From NCBI GenBank assembly GCA_025201805.1, contig MU619287.1:1-52583 (forward strand): a DNA stretch of 52,583 nt, read 5' to 3'. The position numbers were made by a program, and so were the translations under genes. This DNA is from Parasitella parasitica NRRL 2501 (taxonomy: Eukaryota > Fungi > Mucoromycota). Under the pieces are notes generated by a model. That model was given only the letters and a program-made list of their open reading frames with translations. It made no database searches and was not told where the DNA came from. This document shows positions 1,021 through 14,771 of the stretch, in pieces (positions within the stretch are counted from its first letter, which is position 1; each line of letters opens with the position of its first letter).

Positions 1021-1995
1021 ATGGATACTTTCGACGATCCTCAGACCACCCAGACAACTTCAGGAACACCGGCAGAACCAGCACCCACCCTCTGTGAGGC
1101 GACAATACCCACCAACAGCCAAACAGCATCAGACCCTGTCATCCAACAGCTATTACAAACTGTGGAATTACTTCAGCGTGAACTAGCAGCCACCCGCCAA
1201 GAACTTGCGGATCTCAAACGCCAACAACTCCCAGTTGCGAATCTCCCTGCCACCCACACCCCTACTTTTGCTTCCCAACCAGCCCACCCTGCGGGCACCA
1301 CCAACCCCTGGAATCAACCAGACCGGATCGCCAATGTCACTGAATCCCTCTTTGCCGAGAAGGAGCGAGAAAGGAAACGACAACAGAGATACGAAACCTC
1401 GGCTAGAATGCTTCAGTACCCCTCCTCTAACCAAGGTTACGAACATGTATACATCCCCACCAAAGTACGACTCCCCGTTGGCAAACTTCGAACTTTGCTC
1501 CGCAGACTCGGCATCAGTAATGGACGCATTATCGACATCCACTACCCCGTCCGCAACATCGCAGGAATCCTCGTCCACAAGGATTTTGTGGATGACTTTA
1601 AAAACACCTTAATCAAGCGTGGAGGCCGAGTGATTGAAGATTTTGACCCTCGTAGTGGAACCACCATTCAGGACCCTAAGTACGCCGACTACACGGAGAA
1701 TCAACGAGACCAAATTGCATCCTATGTTCATCAAAGCCGCCTCGAAAAATCGCTTCGACATATTCGGGAACCTGTCAAGTTTTCCGTAGCTCGTTACTTC
1801 TACCAACAGTGTTGGATCTCTAAACCCATCTTTGATGAAATCATGGCCACCCGTTCTCCAATGCCCGAAGCAATCTTCGGCCAGGATGCCACTATCACAC
1901 AGACCCTCGAGCCTCGGTCATCAATCACCTTTGAATTTGATGCCGATGGCCTACTCATCATGCCAGATGCTCCTGATCAAATGGACTCTCAATGA
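1021..1995 (+). CDS. LINE ORF1 protein (coiled coil plus putative nucleic-acid-binding domain)
   Basis: 324 aa with coiled-coil heptads (IQQLLQTVELLQRELAATRQELADLK), directly upstream of an RT ORF. The frame stays open upstream to 847. Confidence 0.8.
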   Translation: MDTFDDPQTTQTTSGTPAEPAPTLCEATIPTNSQTASDPVIQQLLQTVELLQRELAATRQELADLKRQQLPVANLPATHTPTFASQPAHPAGTTNPWNQPDRIANVTESLFAEKERERKRQQRYETSARMLQYPSSNQGYEHVYIPTKVRLPVGKLRTLLRRLGISNGRIIDIHYPVRNIAGILVHKDFVDDFKNTLIKRGGRVIEDFDPRSGTTIQDPKYADYTENQRDQIASYVHQSRLEKSLRHIREPVKFSVARYFYQQCWISKPIFDEIMATRSPMPEAIFGQDATITQTLEPRSSITFEFDADGLLIMPDAPDQMDSQ

Positions 1996-4900
1996 GTGAG
2001 ACCCATTTGACAGTATCATTATTTAATGCCACAGGTGCTCCCAAACAAACAATTCATCTACTCCTCCAACTCGCTGGATCCTCCTCCCTTCTCTTCATCA
2101 CCGAAACTTGGCTCCTCCCCAAAAACATCAAATATCCTACATTATGGCGCCAATTCCACACTTACGGTGCTCCTGTCAACTCCTCTCATCCCCATCGTGG
2201 TAAGGATGGCATTGCGCTGCTGGTGAATCCGACATTCAAGCTACCCATTCAACATATTCAACATGAGCATCCTTTACTCACTAAGTTTACCCTCACAGTT
2301 ATTTTAAATCATAAATTATTAATCCATTGTCTATATCTACCACCTTCTTTAGATTCAGAATCAATCGACGAAATACTAGCACTTTTACCATTGCAATACC
2401 ACTCTACTACAAGTACTTTCATATGCGGTGACCTCAATGCCAGACTCGGACCTCATACTGGTGACTCTTCGTTCAACCCTCGAGGACGAAACGTATGGAA
2501 CTGGCTTCAATCGAATAATCTAATCGTTTGGAACAGCAGGCTTTCTTTCGGACAACCAACGAACTACCACTTTCAGGGGCAGAGCATTATAGACTACTTT
2601 ATTAGTGATACAGAATTCCAATCTACGCAACTGACCATTCAGGATGAGAGATCACTCAGCTCCACCCATAAATTCATGACAATGGAATTTGAGGTGCCTA
2701 GCTTGTTACAACCAATCGATAACTCTCCCCTTCCCCAGCGTCTACAGTGGAATTTGAACAAACTGAAAAACAAGACTATATGCCATCAGTATCGCACAAC
2801 CCTCTTACGCAATTTCGGGTCTCTGGACGTAGATTTTACAAGTCTGCATGACAGCAGCAGTGCACGCAATTTCATTGAGAATATAGCAACCACCCTCTGT
2901 ATTGCAATATATGACTCTCTCGACAAAACATGCGGCAAGCGAAACCCACTGACTGATCAATTTCTTAAGGAGTTCTGGACACCAGGCCTTACTGCTGCTT
3001 TTGACCAGAAAGAATCATATTACAAAAAATGGCGAAAGGCTAGAGACACTATTAACAAATTCAGGTACTGGGTACAACACCAGGAAGCTGTGGCAAACCT
3101 TCGTAAACTGATTAGACACAGGCGACAAGAAACCTGGAACCAATTTTGTAACAAAATGGAGCAGGGGGAGTACAACAAGGCCATCACTAGATTCAGCCGC
3201 ATCAGAAAAAATAGAGCTCCCAAACCTAGTTTTTCATCGTTAGACCCACAACAAACAGACGCAGCGGCAATGGCGACACATCTTCAGACCATCTACTCAG
3301 GTAGTCTCCTAAATCAATCGTCAGCCACATTACCTCCACCTTCGACAGAGGTTGTTGCACCGTTCACACAGGAGGCACACCCGTTTGATATTAACGAGAT
3401 CCAGGACCTTATTAAGACCCTGCCCCGCAACAAGGCACCTGGAATGGACCACATAACGGCCGAAATGCTCAAACCGGTGATTGACATAGTGTCGCTGCGA
3501 CTACTTCTTCTCTTCAAATTGTGTTGGTGCTGGTCTTATACACCTCTCTCATGGCGCGTGGCCCAAGTAGTCCCAATCCACAAAAAAGGCCCTGCTACTG
3601 ATCCAGGTAACTTTCGACCCATTAGCCTGACATCTGTTTTTCGGAAACTCTTTGAACAAAGTATATATCATGCATTACAAGCATCAAGCCCTCAACTGGA
3701 CATTGCCCAAGGGGGTTTTAGAGAATACCGAAGTTCCTTAGATCAAGTCTTATGCTTAACTGAAGTTTGCAAAATGCTCCGTCAATACCACCATTTTACC
3801 CCTACGTTGGCTTTTTTGGACATAAAATCGGCTTATGATACCGTTGATCGAAATTTTATCTGGCAGCAATTACAGTCGTTTGTCTCTGCTCCCATGCTGG
3901 CTATTCTGCGGAATCTATTTAATGAAGTGCACATTGAAGTCTTACTCAACAACTCTACCTCACCTAGATTTCAACCAATTACTGGAGTACTGCAAGGATC
4001 CATACTATCCCCCTTCTTATACTCTATCTACATCAATGGTTTACCACATCTCCTACGTCCACATTTGAGTAATGTTAACGAAATGACAAATGCCATCGAA
4101 CTCGCTCCAACAATCACATCCCTCTTGTATGCTGACGATGTTGTCTTGATTGCAAAACCCGAAAAAATGCCACATTTACTACAGACGTGCGAGGATCATA
4201 GTTATACCTTGGGTTACCGTTGGAACCCTAAGAAATGTGTCATTGTTGCTCCACCTCGAGATACTCAAGAATATCACCTTTATGGTACCAACATACCCAA
4301 AGAAACCTCCTTTTCGTATCTTGGCATAGCCATCAAACCAGGTGGAAACATTAATACTGCTACTTTAATACAACAGAATGTCAACAAAGCCAAACAATCC
4401 ATGAATCAAATATCTGCTATCGGGACCAACTCGAAAGGGTTTTCCACATTACTATCGATGCGCTTCTATGTCCAAATGATACGTTCACAAATGGAATATG
4501 GACTAGCAATCTGTGCCTTGAATCAAACAAATATAAAGCAGCTCGAGGCGGGTCAAAATGACTGTGTACGTAAACTGTATGGGGGATCTCGAACATCTTC
4601 AACGAAAGTGATGTTGCGTATGGCCAATCAGCCCTCAATGAAAGATAGATCAATAATTTTGCAAGCTAAATACATACGTCGAGCACTACAACTACCAGAG
4701 GATACACTGTTACAAAAGCTACTACCGCATATCCAAACATCTGCCAGTCATTCTCAATGGTACAAATTAATCTCCAATCCTCTCTGGCAAAAATGTGAAC
4801 CAGTGTTGGACAGATTAGACCGACGTACCTTTAACACCCTGAAGCGAGAATTCCTCCAGGATAGTTATGCCACTCTCTGCAATGGTCCGAATAGCCAAAT

Positions 4901-5171
4901 GATTTCCACTTGCCGTCCAACTTTGGTGGTTGATCCTATTCTATGGCTACCAATGACACGTATGGAGCGTAGTCAGGTAGTTCGATGGCGTCTTGGCTGG
5001 CTTCCAGGAGGCAAACCACGCCCTTGCCCTTTCCACCCGACAACTAATCTCTCTCGTGCTCACGTTACTGACTGTCTGCAGATACATCGCCGACTTCAGT
5101 TGCCTGAATCTATCCAAGACCCTCTTTCTTTCCTGCTTAACTTACTGCCACTAAAAAAGCCCACAAATGCT
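1992..5171 (+). CDS. LINE ORF2: apurinic endonuclease + reverse transcriptase + C-terminal Cys/His knuckle (truncated by gap)
   Basis: APE motifs ITETW, GDLNAR, IIDYF and SSTH. RT motifs KAPGMD, NFRPISL, QGGFR, LDIKSAYD, GVLQGSILSP, YADD and YLGI. C-terminal CPFH-x8-H-x3-C. No stops over ~1060 codons. Confidence 0.95.
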
Positions 5172-5516
5172 NNNNNNNNNNNNNNNNNNNNNNNNNNNNN
5201 NNNNNNNNNNNNNNNNNNNNNNNNNNNNNNNNNNNNNNNNNNNNNNNNNNNNNNNNNNNNNNNNNNNNNNNNNNNNNNNNNNNNNNNNNNNNNNNNNNNN
5301 NNNNNNNNNNNNNNNNNNNNNNNNNNNNNNNNNNNNNNNNNNNNNNNNNNNNNNNNNNNNNNNNNNNNNNNNNNNNNNNNNNNNNNNNNNNNNNNNNNNN
5401 NNNNNNNNNNNNNNNNNNNNNNNNNNNNNNNNNNNNNNNNNNNNNNNNNNNNNNNNNNNNNNNNNNNNNNNNNNNNNNNNNNNNNNNNNNNNNNNNNNNN
5501 NNNNNNNNNNNNNNNN
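5172..5516. other. Assembly gap (345 N)
   Basis: Run of N. ORFs spanning it are artefacts. Confidence 1.
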
Positions 5517-6548
5517 AACTGGTCCGGGCAATGCAGTTATTCCAACTATTGTGCTCATTATGACCATTTTTATTTTCCTTTTTATTTAATAAAATTTCTC
5601 ATTTAACCGTATATTGAGAAATCAATATCTCTGGGTGTGTATCCTATAACATTTTGTTCCTGAGGTCGGTGTTAAATCCTGATGAATGTTCTTCCATCAA
5701 AGCTACTAGGAACAACATTCTATCCTTCATACGTATCTATGCTCTTGTCTTACTGGTAACTCGGAAACTCTTATCCACCAAGCTCCTAGGGATTGGTTCA
5801 AGGTGTATCCAATTATCCCTCATCCTAGATCATGATCCTATTGCTGCGGCACTGTCAAAATAACTAAAAATACCTTCAAAACATAAACTAGTTTAAATCT
5901 TCATTCAATCTTGGAATAGCAAAATAAATATATTCAGTTCTAATTGTATTTTTCTGTCTATATTTTGTTACTGTATTCTAGACATAGATAAGGATATCTT
6001 TAACAGAATAACTAAAGTATGACGATAGCCATCCTGACACGGCCAACCAATGTTACGCAAATCTCCATCAATGGTGAAAGCATTCAGCATAATTTGCTTC
6101 TCCTGAAAACCTAAAATTAAACAACAAATTAATGCATTGACTCGAGGATCAATCTATGAGAACTGATATACAACAATTCAAATCCTATAAATACTAAGAT
6201 GTTTTCCTCTAGATAGAACCTCAGCATACTTTTATAATAAAGAACCCCAAACTTGATTATAATTGTAATTTCATATCGCTTTTATTTTTGTTTTTTTTAT
6301 TTCGTAAATCTTTCAAATTTACTGCATGGATATCTCACTAGTCTCTCATCTTTTTTGTTACTCCTTTAAATTTGGGCTCTGTTCTTTCGCTCGTGGAATC
6401 AAAACTTGTCAAGTATAAACAAAAGTCTTTCATTGCAGCTGGTATTCCTCATTGACCACTTGCTTTCTTCAAAATAAATTTACTATTATGATAATCTGCG
6501 TTCTACTTATATATTTATCCAATTAACTTAAATTAATATAGACTACAT

Positions 6549-8804: not shown

Positions 8805-11800
8805 ATGATTTCCAATCCCAACCACAATGTGCAATCTATCATCAGCAATGAGAACCTTTTAGCGACTTTGACTGAAAAAGATGAATTAATATACGAGAGG
8901 AACAACATCCGTCTCAGTCAAATGGAGGCAGAGGTCCGTCAGCTGGCAACGTATGGTGGAGCTTGCGATGAGCTGCTAGAATGGCTCAGTGATACTCGTG
9001 CTTATAACCCATACAATGAAAAGGCACTTTTGGGGTGTATTAGTGCCATTTCTGAAAAAGCTACGGAATACGGACCTTGGTCTGGTATGGAAATCCTTAA
9101 AGAAGCAAATCAAAAGTGTGTTAATAGATTGTCTGACAAGGGACGAGGTATGCATTATTGGTCAATATATCGAAATTGTGCGAAATGTTAATGCTAGTCG
9201 TTCCAATTAGCCTATGTTAAAAAATGCTTTGAAGACTTACAAAATTCAGTGAATGGACGAAGATCTAGTAATACCTCCTCAATGTCCAGTACATCGGTAT
9301 CACATCCCTCGCCTTCTTTGCTGATCAGTAATAAATTCGCTCAACAAGCTACTGTGCCAGAGTCACCTACAGCAGCCACCAGTAGTTTTAGCCAATCGGT
9401 AAAGCTCTTCGATCCTTCTCTTTTTCCACAATCCCCCAATTCTAATACTGGCTCACCGTTGGCGTCACCGCAGTTTACAGGAGCTGAAGTAATAACAGCT
9501 TCTCCTCACGCAGCAAACTCTACGTATCCCGTTTCAACAGACAACCACTTGAACAATTACTTGCAGCGTCAAATTGAACAGCGAGCGGCACAATCCAAGC
9601 AAAATGAACAACTGGGTTTGCAAACCCAACAGCAATACATGCAGCAATACCACCAACAGCAATACCAGCAGCAACAGCCGCAGCCGCAGCCACAGCCGCA
9701 ACAGCCGCAACAGCCCCAAATAAACGTGCAGCGTTTGAGTCCAGCGCAGTTGCAACACATAAAGAACATGCAAATGCAACATGAGCAGCTTCGCAGAGCC
9801 CAGCAAGAAGAGCAGCGAAAGCTGCTGAGACAGCAAGAGATAAGAAAGCAACGAGAGCAGTACGAACTGCAAAGACGACTTGAGGCACAGAGATTACAAG
9901 AAACCCAAAGAATACAAGAAGCTAAAATAATTGAGCAGCTGAAGCAACGCCAAATACAACTGCAAGGCCAATATCAAGCACAACAGCCGCAGCAACAGCA
10001 ACAGCAGCAGCAACAGCAACAGCAGCAGCAACAGCAGCAGCAACAGCAGCAACAACAGCAACAGCAGCAGCAACAAACTTTAATGAGGCAGTATCACCAG
10101 CATCTTGGTAAACCACCGCAGCCTCCTGCTTCTAATAATGTGCCTCCTACTGTTGTCATGGCAGCTGCAGCAAATTCTGGTCAATATCAAGTATCTAGAC
10201 AGCAACAAGACCCTCGAATGAACAACTACTGGCTAATGAACAACAGCAGTATGAATATTTCTTCAGACCTATTTTCAGCTGCTGCAGCAACTACTATAGC
10301 TAATACACCGGTTACATCTACATTCATCACACCAGCTGCCTCTGCAACCGCCCCTTCTCCTTTAACAGCTATCCCGGAAAACACTGCAGTAACTGGTACA
10401 TCCATCAATGTCACACCATCTGTCACAGAAACACCATCATCACACCCAAAGCCACTTGCAAGCAATGGTATTTCTAAATCATCATTATCAGTCCCATCGA
10501 CGCCCAATATACCGACAAAGGCCATACCTAGAAGTGCAAGCATATCAGTTTATCCGTCTGATACACGTCCCTCTGCAGATACGTTAAAAATTCATCTCCC
10601 TGGGGGTGGTACCATTCATAAGCCTTATGATGCCGCCGTCGACAGCTTTGCCAAACCAACCGGCCAGGGCGATAAAATCGAATACCAACACAAGGTGAGA
10701 CATGCCTTCCAGCCGTTTCGACTCGTCCATGGCGAAGTTGTCACCAAAAAGTCTTTCTTTATTGCAGACGACGAGTACGACAAGCTGTTCAAAAACCCAA
10801 ATACCACCTTCATCGATTATCGCGGTCAAGTACCGTTATCTTATGTAATAACTGCTTGGTATGACAACACCCCAGAACGCAAGTGCGACTGGCCTACGGG
10901 AGCTCGCATTGAGCTGAATGGCCATAATTTACCGCTGCAAAAGGTACAATGATGTAGCATGATGTCTGCGAGTGTGGTACTAACAATCTACAACAGAGGG
11001 AAAAGATCAATAACCCAAATGGCCCATCCACCATCTCTGGCAAGGACAAGCCATTTGATTTAACCAGATTACTGACAAGAGGTACGAATACCCTTGTTCT
11101 CCACCAACCAAAGTGTGCCTGTGTGAGTAGCCTATCAGAATGGACGCAATGCTATCCAGACACTAACCGTAAATTTGACAACCTAGTCGTATTCCTTTGC
11201 AGTGCAAGTCTTTATTAGACCAAGCGAAAATTTCATCCGCAGCCTTGTAAAGAATAATATCATCAGCATTGACAAAAGTAATCGCTTGATTGATAATTTA
11301 CTTGGCAAGTTCAAAAGCGAAGATAACAACGACGAAGACCTTGTCATTATACAGAAATCGGTTACCCTCAAATTGAAATGCCCTCTTATGTTTAGAAGAA
11401 TGAATCAGCCTGTTCGAGGCGTCGACTGCAAACATGTTGACGTAAGTTGTTTATAAGAGTGCATAGTGCAAACAGTAGTTTCTAACAAACATCCCACACA
11501 GTGCTTTGATTTGGAAGCCTATCTCATGGTCAACAAGGTTGAGAACCCTACCTGGGCATGTCCTCACTGCAACAACACCATTGGCCCTACATCGTTAGCT
11601 CGCGATCTACTAGTGGAGCAGTTACTAGTAACCCTGCCCAAGCGAGCATCTGAAATAGAGTACATTGGGGATCACTCGAACTTTAAGATCGTCAGAATGG
11701 AGGATCCTGATTCAGACGATGAGGATGACCAAGACGACAAGGACAACGTGTTCAAGTATATAGCAAAAGACAACAGCACATCCCTTGGACAAGCAGCTGC

Positions 11801-11927
11801 TACCAGTGCATCGAATGGAAATGTTATAGATCTGATTAGTGATGATGAAGACGAGGAAATAGGACAGGACGTTCAACGTGGCAATAATACTCCGTTAAAG
11901 AGAGGTTGGGATGCCCAAAACCACTGA
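8805..11927 (+). CDS. ZMIZ1/2-like SP-RING (zf-MIZ) protein with polyQ region and C-terminal SIM
   Basis: Five exons join in frame across GT-AG introns: 8805-9147, 9211-10943, 10997-11122, 11187-11441, 11502-11927. [37 protein letters not shown]...WACPHCN. N-terminal ELLEWLSDTRAYNPYNEKALLGCI is ZMIZ1_N-like. SIM VIDLISDDEDEE. Confidence 0.88.
9990..10076 (+). repeat. CAG/CAA repeat encoding 29 consecutive Gln
   Basis: Read directly in exon 2 of the ZMIZ-like gene. Confidence 0.95.
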
Positions 11928-12699: not shown

Positions 12700-12833
12700 G
12701 TAGCTAATGAGAAAAAAAAAAAAAAAAAAGGAGAAACAACAAAACCGCTGGGCATCCCTTGGGTCATTTTTATGCCGCCACAATCGAGGGAAAAAAAAAA
12801 AGTACCTGTTCTTTTTGTTCTTATTTCATAACC

Positions 12834-14771
12834 ATGTCTGGCTCAGGCTCAGGGTCAGGCTCTTTCCCCAAATTGCAACATTCAGAATCTTTGCTATCAT
12901 TGAGAACTCGAAAAAGCAACCAAGATTTTAGCGTCTTGGCAGCAGAGAATCTAGGAAGAAAGGTGTCTCCACTTGTAGACGAAAGAGTCTTTGCAGCATC
13001 TGTTGCCGATAATTATGAAGAGCGTGATGAACTATTAGGACAAGGAAACAGCGAGGTAATAGAGATAGGAAATTACGACCAAGACTGGTCAGATGTAAGG
13101 GCAAAGGACCCTCGCAGAGGATGGCTTAAACGGGCTCATTGCACAAGAGTATGGATCAAGCCGCTAGGTTCTAGCATTTTTCTCAACATTGACTAATGCC
13201 TGTTTAGAAATGCTGGATGGGGTTGCTCTTGGTGCTATTTATTTTAGGCTTGTTTGGACTAGTAACCAAAGTCGCTATAAACGAGCTCAATAAGGATTCC
13301 ATTGCGAAAGCCCATCTATATTACAATGGCTCGGCCTATTTTGAGACAACTGTCATTTATGTATCCCTGGATGGCTTTAGAAACGATTATTTGGATAGAA
13401 AAGTTACACCAAACATCGACCTATTAGGTATATACATTTGTTCGATGCTAAACAAATCAGACATGGCTGACATTTGGTTGTAATCTTTTAGCTGAACAGG
13501 GAATCCGTGCTGAATATTTGATACCATCCTTTCCGGTAAGAACAAGCTTCCACATGTCGATAACATTCTAACAGCAAGCCAGTCAATTACCTTTCCAAAT
13601 CATTGGACTTTGGCTACCGGTCTCTATCCTGAGTCTCATGGCATTGTAGCAAATGAGTTTTACGATCCTGGTATGAAAGAAGAGTTTATACACAAAAAGC
13701 CATCTATCAGTGGTGATCCCAAGTGGTGGGGCGGTGAGCCTATATGGGTCACTAGTAAAAACCAAGGCAAGAAGTCTGCTGTCATAATGTGGCCTGGATC
13801 CAATGTGCCGATTCATCAAGTATCGCCTGACTATTACATTGCCTATACAAGAGAGACAACAGCTATTGATAAAATGGACATTGCGTTAGACTGGCTGGAT
13901 ATGCCCATCGATAAAAGACCGCAGTCTATTTCCATTTATATTCCCCAAGTAGATCAAAAGGGCCATGGTGGAGGACCTGAAGGAAAACAGGCAAGTTTTG
14001 TACGCAAAAAGACTGGGGGAAAAAAATTACTGATATATGTCTGCATCCACAGTTGAATTCAGTGTTAAAGAGCATGGACGACGCCTTGGGTCATCTAATG
14101 TCTGGTTTAGCTGAGCGAAACATAGACAAGCATGTGCATCTTGTAGTGGTATGTTTTCTGCAGTTGTCGTGTATAGCTTTTACAAATGGCTCATAAAGAA
14201 CTTGCAGGTCAGCGATCACGGCATGGCAGCGTCCGACAAATCCAGACTGATCTATTACGATGAGATTATATCTGCAGAGTCAGAATCCTACCTTCGCAAA
14301 CGAGAGGCATGGCCTTTGCTAGGCCTTCGTCCAAAAGATGACGCACCTGAATTTGCCCTAGATCAGATATATAGAGAAATCCGTGAATACATCAAGAAGA
14401 ACGAAGCCCCTCATTTTCAAGTTTACAAAAGGAAAGACATGCCAGCAAGATTTCATTACAATTCTACAGAGCGTATTGCACCCATCATCCTGATACCGGA
14501 TGTAGGATATTCCATCATTCACAGCACAGATTACAATCAAAATTCTGAAAAACCTTATAGTCCGAGAGGAATCCATGGCTATGACAACATGGCGCTGGAA
14601 ATGAGGGCAATTTTTGCTGCCAGAGGACCAAGCATCGAGGAGGCCTATATCCCAGGCACGGTAGTAAGCCCTTTCTATAATATTGAATTGTACAAGTTTT
14701 TGACGAATATACTTGATTTGAACTCTGCGCCCAACAATGCGACATTGAACGGTGTATTTAACAAGTTGTAA
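12834..14771 (+). CDS. Nucleotide pyrophosphatase/phosphodiesterase (type II membrane, alkaline phosphatase superfamily, NPP1-like)
   Basis: TM helix followed by [44 protein letters not shown], SDHGM and GIHGYDN across several short introns. Confidence 0.92.

Follow-up and report, generated by a model that had tools for sequence, protein, structure and literature searches.

The window, by which we mean the whole stretch of DNA analysed, comprises positions 1-52,583 of contig MU619287.1 of Parasitella parasitica NRRL 2501 (Mucoromycota; GenBank assembly GCA_025201805.1). An earlier interpretation made from the letters alone, here called the sequence-only reading, had drawn attention to a gene at 8805-11927 and described it as an apparently complete co-activator of the animal ZMIZ1/2 type with a PIAS-like SUMO-interaction motif (SIM). 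We show here that an intact gene lies at this locus, and we consider it quite probable that its product belongs to the ZMIZ branch of the SP-RING (PIAS-like) proteins, is functional and was inherited vertically in fungi. ZMIZ1 and ZMIZ2 are co-activators of Notch1, the androgen receptor, p53 and SMADs, and both are human disease genes; to our knowledge, they have been studied only in animals. All the sequence blocks quoted in the sequence-only reading were found on the + strand where it had placed them, and the gene has the following parts.

8805-11927, + strand: whole gene, five exons, intact; coding sequence of 2883 nt, encoding 960 residues
8805-9147, + strand: exon 1, with the ATG at 8805; most of the N-terminal helical Zmiz1_N / tetratricopeptide repeat (TPR)-like domain
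9148-9210, + strand: intron 1, 63 nt, GT...AG; acceptor revised relative to the open reading frame (ORF) starting at 9249
9211-10943, + strand: exon 2; last part of the N domain (to ~9250), Q/S/P-rich disordered and coiled-coil region, first two-thirds of the GBD-like beta domain
from ~10677, + strand: start of the GBD-like (PINIT-type) beta domain, PF25527 match in exon 2
10713-10730, + strand: PFRLVH motif of the pre-RING domain, read in the sequence
10944-10996, + strand: intron 2, 53 nt; branch site TACTAAC
10997-11122, + strand: exon 3; GBD-like domain continued (KPFDL...GTNTL...CAC)
11123-11186, + strand: intron 3, 64 nt, spanned by the end of the beta domain, CAC|SYSFAVQVFIRPS
11187-11441, + strand: exon 4; last GBD-like strand (SYSFAVQVFIRPS), linker, first half of the SP-RING
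11427-11435, + strand: SP-RING Cys-x-His ligands CKH, in exon 4
11442-11501, + strand: intron 4, 60 nt, dividing the SP-RING between CKHVD and CFDLE
11502-11927, + strand: exon 5; second half of the SP-RING, SP-CTD-like segment, acidic tail, stop
11559-11570, + strand: SP-RING ligands CPHC, in exon 5
11823-11858, + strand: SIM and acidic run VIDLISDDEDEE, in exon 5
11925-11927, + strand: stop codon

All four introns are short (53-64 nt) and run from GT to AG, and the branch site in each is of the CTAAC type or similar. An orthologue from Parasitella parasitica, P0001 (910 aa), aligns to AYVKKCFEDLQNS, which is encoded from 9211, and so places the end of intron 1 at 9210 and not near 9249; starting exon 2 at 9211 adds about 13 conserved residues to the N-terminal domain. 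The exons of the window gene were searched singly, and P0001 served as the full-length stand-in for its product. The Q/S/P-rich region encoded by exon 2 is 21% glutamine and includes an uninterrupted run of 29 glutamines at 9990-10076. Given that the run is much shorter in the Parasitella orthologue, the length of the polyglutamine tract is unstable between close relatives.

The domains of the protein are those of ZMIZ proteins. Exon 1 matches the Pfam family Zmiz1_N (PF18028) over residues 32-90 at 41.9 bits, above the cut-off of 28.9, in agreement with what the sequence-only reading had expected of the N terminus. The end of exon 2 matches GBD-like_ZMIZ1_ZMIZ2 (PF25527) at 44.8 bits (cut-off 26; residues 476-563 of the exon piece), and exon 3 carries the match on over profile positions 83-113 with 24.8 bits, below the same cut-off; a profile search of the genome gave this domain 51.5 bits at 10677-10958. 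The SP-RING, which is divided by intron 4, is matched by zf-MIZ in two halves, the first in exon 4 (28.5 bits, profile positions 2-24) and the second in exon 5 (24.3 bits, profile positions 26-49). Each half is below the cut-off of 33.5, and summed in the genome search they reach 53.6 bits. In full-length P0001 the three domains score 94.4 (PF25527), 65.8 (zf-MIZ) and 40.7 bits (Zmiz1_N, profile positions 3-96 of 99). The ligand columns of the SP-RING and the residues flanking them are invariant among 29 fungal and animal relatives (alignment A2), and exon 4 aligns to animal ZMIZ from its first residue but to Pli1 only from residue 46. The sequence-only reading had seen no SAP domain, and Pfam bears this out, since neither SAP (PF02037) nor PINIT (PF14324) matched any of the exons at E <= 1, or P0001 at E <= 0.01.

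The N-terminal domain was also compared with known structures. With exon 1 as query, phmmer matched a single protein in the PDB, human ZMIZ1 (5aiz, E 3.2e-6), and a profile of 13 fungal N domains (alignment A1) matched the same entry at E 2.3e-8. An AlphaFold model of the domain built on A1 has a predicted local distance difference test score (pLDDT) of 78 and places helices at residues 24-44, 47-62, 72-89 and 91-108. Foldseek ranked 5aiz first for this model, with template modelling (TM) scores of 0.68/0.71 and a root-mean-square deviation (rmsd) of 1.3 A, the next match having an E value of 1. With VIA-align, 89 residues were superposed on 5aiz with Z 14.1 and rmsd 1.8 A, and the next chain had Z 8.9. 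Thus, the comparison with the TPR structure of ZMIZ1 that the sequence-only reading had proposed puts 5aiz 5 Z units above every other chain. A look-up in the ESM Atlas returned generic helical-repeat neighbours only. The animal motifs cited in the sequence-only reading are also genuine: the N-terminal motif of human ZMIZ1 is present in PDB chain 5aiz_A, and the pre-MIZ motifs PPFRLEHNL and CCCSHLFVLQLVHRPS are present in the ZMIZ1-like protein P0037 of Haliotis.

The core of the family was modelled on P0014, a 415-residue orthologue fragment (Cunninghamella-like) that runs from the beta domain through the RING to the tail, with an alignment of 29 sequences. The model has pLDDT > 90 for residues 1-280 and matches the crystal structures of Siz1, Siz2, PIAS2 and PIAS3 at E ~1e-16 over ~280 columns; by sequence, phmmer matched P0014 to 3i2d at E 1e-17. 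The E3 core of the fungal ZMIZ-like family is accordingly modelled with a Siz/PIAS-type fold, and this predicted fold is the basis for the E3 mechanism proposed below.

Relatives of the protein occur in early-diverging fungi and in animals. In a word-index protein search the exon 2 domain matched only P0001, and the core of P0001 matched only itself. An exhaustive search of representative sequences with P0001 gave 3407 matches at E <= 1e-3, 450 of them at E <= 1e-10 and 25 at E <= 1e-30, and the best 150 of the 3407 were re-scored domain by domain, with cluster names as a guide to their origin. Proteins with all three domains were found in ten more genera of Mucorales (Benjaminiella, Sporodiniella, Circinella, Dichotomocladium, Apophysomyces, Absidia, Cunninghamella, Radiomyces, Hesseltinella and Gongronella) and, beyond that order, in Calcarisporiella and the Glomeromycotina (Ambispora, Funneliformis). 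The Basidiobolus proteins have an N domain (46-47 bits) and a RING, and PF25527 gives no match to them. The next-best matches are animal ZMIZ proteins, from Haliotis, Limulus, Ciona, Gymnothorax, Intoshia, Hypsibius and Macrostomum. Among the best 150 of the 3407 matches no dikaryan protein with an N-domain match was identified: apart from 17 short, nameless fragments of untraced origin, all proteins with such a match belong to Mucoromycota, Basidiobolus or the animals.

Many of the short database proteins of 110-250 aa among the matches (P0010, P0012, P0018, P0020, P0026 and others) correspond to exon 1 read on into intron 1 and end in ...GRG..., which suggests that models of the gene on short contigs are often wrong. 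P0019 (1519 aa), found in the exhaustive search, has an unusual multi-RING architecture, with four tandem SP-RING domains (zf-MIZ 219 bits in 4 stretches) and a weak GBD-like match. PF25527 also picks out SAP-PHD-MIZ proteins (e.g. of the oomycete Lagenidium) and SP-RING proteins of amoebozoans and Diphylleia (P0109, P0070, P0145, P0075, P0116). Since the model cross-matches PINIT-type domains in this way, it is not specific to ZMIZ at low scores.

The novelty of a fungal orthologue is smaller than the sequence-only reading implied. NCBI and UniProt already list many such orthologues, annotated with the Pfam domains described above; one of them, KAK9768109.1 of Basidiobolus ranarum, carries the NCBI name "Zinc finger MIZ domain-containing protein 2", and the other fungal records are labelled "hypothetical" or "SP-RING-type domain-containing". 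Our literature searches on ZMIZ in fungi, in opisthokonts or in phylogeny found no paper on a non-animal ZMIZ. A review of SUMO in fungi compares only Siz1 with human ZMIZ (PMC7691676), and a 2026 review of ZMIZ1 has no word on evolution beyond animals (PMC13687641). Fungal ZMIZ-type proteins are therefore already in the databases, and none of them is characterised in the searchable literature.

The C-terminal tail differs in kind between the fungal and the animal proteins. The SIM VIDLISDDEDEE is conserved as NVI[DSN]L[IL]SDD followed by acidic residues in 11/11 Mucorales orthologues, with equivalents in Calcarisporiella (IEVICLDSDDE), Ambispora (EVIVLDDSDDDD) and Funneliformis (AIIILDDDDEDE), and in the Mucoromycota orthologues it lies 60-90 residues after the RING. 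The PIAS-like SIM is thus real and conserved in Mucoromycota. The five animal ZMIZ proteins checked lack the SIM-plus-acidic motif, and so do the proteins of Basidiobolus, in which the chain stops 37 residues beyond the RING. To describe the window protein as an apparently complete animal-type ZMIZ goes too far. Past its last zinc ligand it has no more than 118 residues, most of them acidic, whereas the tails of the five animal proteins are proline-rich and 220-380 residues long, and those of Haliotis, Limulus, Gymnothorax and Ciona (4/5) end in ...LLSYL...LFE-type motifs. The proline-rich C-terminal tail is the transactivation region of ZMIZ1 (PMC13687641). The predicted architecture of the window protein thus joins a ZMIZ-type N-terminal part to a PIAS-like C-terminal part, and the SIM may be either ancestral or a gain of the Mucoromycota.

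A profile search of the genome, 32.8 Mb in 450 contigs, found Zmiz1_N and PF25527 at no locus other than the window gene. A separate gene on contig C195 has the single PINIT match of the genome (77.5 bits), a zf-MIZ match of 73 bits, a YIDLT...acidic SIM and a SAP-like N-terminal stretch that Pfam leaves unscored; its domain content identifies it as the predicted canonical Siz/PIAS gene. Because this gene exists separately, the window gene is not the Siz1 of the genome. The sequence-only reading had preferred ZMIZ to Siz1, and this preference is upheld, as two ZMIZ-specific Pfam domains precede the SP-RING in the animal order. The genome also holds two divergent, mutually similar SP-RING-only genes, at C61:92718-92840 (L002) and C43:174224-174352 (L003), with zf-MIZ scores of 48.8 and 41 bits. 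Pfam found no SAP, PINIT or GBD-like domain in either, and each has a hydrophobic-plus-acidic, SIM-like stretch after its RING.

The gene is under purifying selection. Its product is 64% identical to P0001 over the full length and 72-98% per exon piece, with 81% for exon 1 (against P0001 residues 1-114) and 98% for exon 3. Against the P0001 gene, synonymous divergence (dS) is 0.67-0.98, and the ratio of nonsynonymous to synonymous divergence (dN/dS) is 0.18 in exon 1, 0.22 in the disordered middle, 0.08 in the beta domain of exon 2, 0.01 in exon 3, 0.10 in exon 4 and 0.20 in exon 5. Readings of the locus as a pseudogene or an artefact are ruled out by the intact exons together with these ratios of 0.01-0.22. 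The downstream neighbour in the window (12759-14771, + strand) is a multi-exon gene of the nucleotide pyrophosphatase/phosphodiesterase type. A PF01663 gene occupies the same position in the same orientation at the Parasitella locus (L016, 11904-13859), and on account of this common downstream neighbour the window gene and the P0001 gene are syntenic. Just upstream of the gene, an ORF of 1204 codons (1992-5606, + strand; partly N-masked at ~5170-5550) has reverse-transcriptase-like motifs (e.g. YADDVV) and looks like a non-LTR (long terminal repeat) retrotransposon.

The phylogeny of the catalytic core was examined with a FastTree tree of 96 rows, IQ-TREE mixture-model trees of 50 and 40 rows and two approximately unbiased (AU) tests. 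The sequences were drawn from the best 150 of the 3407 matches, a sample without animal PIAS and unicellular holozoans. In the 50-row tree the ZMIZ-like cores of Mucoromycota form a clade with support 94/88, to which Basidiobolus is attached weakly (55/65), and the animal ZMIZ proteins form another (100/100). The window family falls outside the Pli1/Siz clade of Dikarya (100/99), which is anchored by Pli1 of S. japonicus, and the backbone of the tree is weak (55/65 and 88/73). After removal of the long rows of plant/stramenopile-type SAP-PHD proteins, the 40-row tree retains the fungal clade (92/75) and places Pli1/Siz together with the amoebozoan sequences (91/85), separate from the fungal and the animal ZMIZ clade. 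This topology is compatible with, and no proof of, monophyly of ZMIZ, which it would fit if the root lay on the PIAS/Siz side. The fungal clade, with Mucorales, Calcarisporiella, Glomeromycotina and Basidiobolus, is in line with fungal taxonomy. Two motifs of the beta domain point in the same direction as the domain order. PF[RK]LxH is present in 11/11 animal ZMIZ proteins and 5/15 fungal members, and CxCSxxFxxQ in 8/11 and 3/15, respectively, the window protein having both; neither occurs in any of 24 Pli1/Siz, amoebozoan/other and SAP-PHD sequences (0/24). Orthology to ZMIZ is thus argued from the N domain common to both groups, the animal domain order and these two motifs. Of the SP-RING phylogeny that the sequence-only reading had called for, the separation of the fungal clade from Pli1/Siz held, and AU rejects neither the grouping with animal ZMIZ (p 0.31) nor that with Pli1/Siz (p 0.32).

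Several observations weigh against a fungal ZMIZ protein of this kind. The fungal Zmiz1_N scores are modest, at ~41 bits compared with 140-150 in animals, and PF25527 gives some SAP-PHD and amoebozoan SP-RING proteins 25-50 bits, mostly above its cut-off. The maximum-likelihood (ML) core trees do not join fungal and animal ZMIZ, and the AU test is as compatible with a clade of fungal proteins and Pli1/Siz (p 0.319) as with one of fungal and animal ZMIZ (p 0.314). The animal transactivation tail has no counterpart in the window protein, and the tail of P0001 matches only Mucorales relatives. In addition, SUMO E3 activity is less well established for animal ZMIZ1 than for canonical PIAS proteins (PMC13687641).

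The trees and the SIM, which is a PIAS/Siz trait, would both be accommodated if the gene were a divergent fungal paralogue of Siz/PIAS, that is, an old Siz duplicate that lost SAP and whose N-terminal helices merely resemble Zmiz1_N. In that case, however, one would have to account for Zmiz1_N matches above cut-off in Mucorales, Calcarisporiella and Basidiobolus alike, for an N-domain fold that matches 5aiz better than all other chains by 5 Z units, for three domains ordered as in animals with GBD motifs common only to animal ZMIZ, and for the reduced tree, in which the group of Pli1/Siz and amoebozoan sequences (91/85) excludes the fungal ZMIZ-like clade. We therefore regard such a paralogue as very unlikely. 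One might also consider that fungi acquired the gene from an animal by horizontal transfer, given that the family is otherwise known from animals and that some Mucoromycota and Basidiobolus live with animals. Yet the domains are just 24-37% identical to those of animal ZMIZ, the introns are short and of fungal type, the deep fungal lineages that have the gene number at least four and branch in keeping with their taxonomy, and synteny is kept within Mucoraceae, all of which makes horizontal transfer extremely improbable. Vertical descent of a fungal ZMIZ gene remains the explanation we prefer.

Following this explanation, the fungal ZMIZ protein would be a nuclear transcriptional co-regulator of the SUMO E3 type. 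By analogy with Siz1 and PIAS, its SP-RING, PINIT-like domain and SP-CTD segment would engage Ubc9~SUMO, and the SIM would hold SUMO or SUMOylated partners. The helical N domain may recruit a DNA-bound partner, and the Q-rich region may give multivalent or activating contacts. As we know of no Notch in fungi, the partner of the N domain cannot be Notch. A ZMIZ homologue could also work without catalysis, as a co-activator or adaptor that acts through the N domain, the Q-rich region and the SIM, with the SP-RING as a protein-binding module. Regulation through SUMOylation is less well established for ZMIZ1, which acts mostly by direct binding, than for PIAS (PMC13687641), and the long Q-rich disordered region of the window protein would suit a scaffold. 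However, the four zinc ligands and their flanks are invariant, the modelled core fold matches those of active E3 enzymes, the SIM and acidic run that are typical of active PIAS/Siz ligases are conserved across Mucoromycota, and the animal transactivation tail is absent. For these reasons we think a purely non-catalytic scaffold unlikely, if by no means far-fetched, and retain the E3-type co-regulator as our working model.

The conserved domains show that the ZMIZ family probably predates the split of animals and fungi. The TPR domain of ZMIZ has been described as a Notch1-binding module. A conserved and selected orthologue in fungi that lack Notch implies that both the family and its TPR domain arose before animal signalling and that a Notch-independent function is required. 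It is conceivable, although on balance we doubt it, that the SIM tail was later exchanged in animals for the transactivation tail, while the TPR domain was put to new use with Notch1. Mucoromycota would in that case have retained the ancestral form, and their TPR domain would have a partner independent of Notch, possibly among the expanded CSL factors. If so, that partner would reveal the role of ZMIZ before Notch. Mucor-type fungi are genetically tractable and would offer a simple system in which to find the ancestral TPR partner and to establish the true E3 activity of a ZMIZ protein. The gene is also a further case of early-diverging fungi keeping "animal" genes that seem to be missing from Dikarya; as this pattern is already well described for other pathways, the surprise is limited.

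The sequence-only reading went further and suggested that the protein belongs to a pre-Notch regulatory module with CSL and SWI-SNF. The genome contains six CSL loci (PF09271, 75-166 bits), on contigs C1, C114, C6, C84, C163 and C53 (L010-L015), which resemble the expansion to seven CSL genes in Rhizopus (Rhizopus oryzae; PMC1973085). Fission yeasts and basidiomycetes, however, have CSL as well (PMC1973085), and among the matches listed no ZMIZ-type protein was identified from either group. The published TPR partner of ZMIZ1 is Notch1, not CSL (PMC13687641). A ZMIZ/CSL/SWI-SNF module in fungi is thus speculation.

Among the close counterparts in databases is the P0001 protein, which has the same architecture as the window protein and a syntenic locus. 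The Basidiobolus proteins differ from it in that they stop 37 residues after the RING, carry no SIM and have no PF25527 match. With animal ZMIZ1/ZMIZ2 (Zimp10/Zimp7; tonalli in Drosophila) the window protein shares the Zmiz1_N TPR-like domain, the long disordered middle, the GBD-like domain with PFRLxH and CxCSxxFxxQ, an SP-RING with identical ligand spacing and the lack of SAP. Unlike them, it has a SIM-plus-acidic tail in place of the proline-rich transactivation tail, and its middle is Q-rich with a coiled coil, whereas that of animals is Ala/Pro-rich; domain identity is only 24-37%, and Notch1, the known TPR partner, is not found in fungi. With Siz1, Siz2, Pli1 and PIAS1-4 it shares the C-terminal SIM followed by acidic residues and, on the model of the core, the arrangement of a PINIT-type beta domain, SP-RING and SP-CTD. 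In contrast to those proteins, it has neither SAP, which the Pli1-clade matches carry, nor a Pfam PINIT match; it lies outside the Pli1/Siz clade (100/99), and it possesses in addition the Zmiz1_N domain and a 450-residue disordered region before the core.

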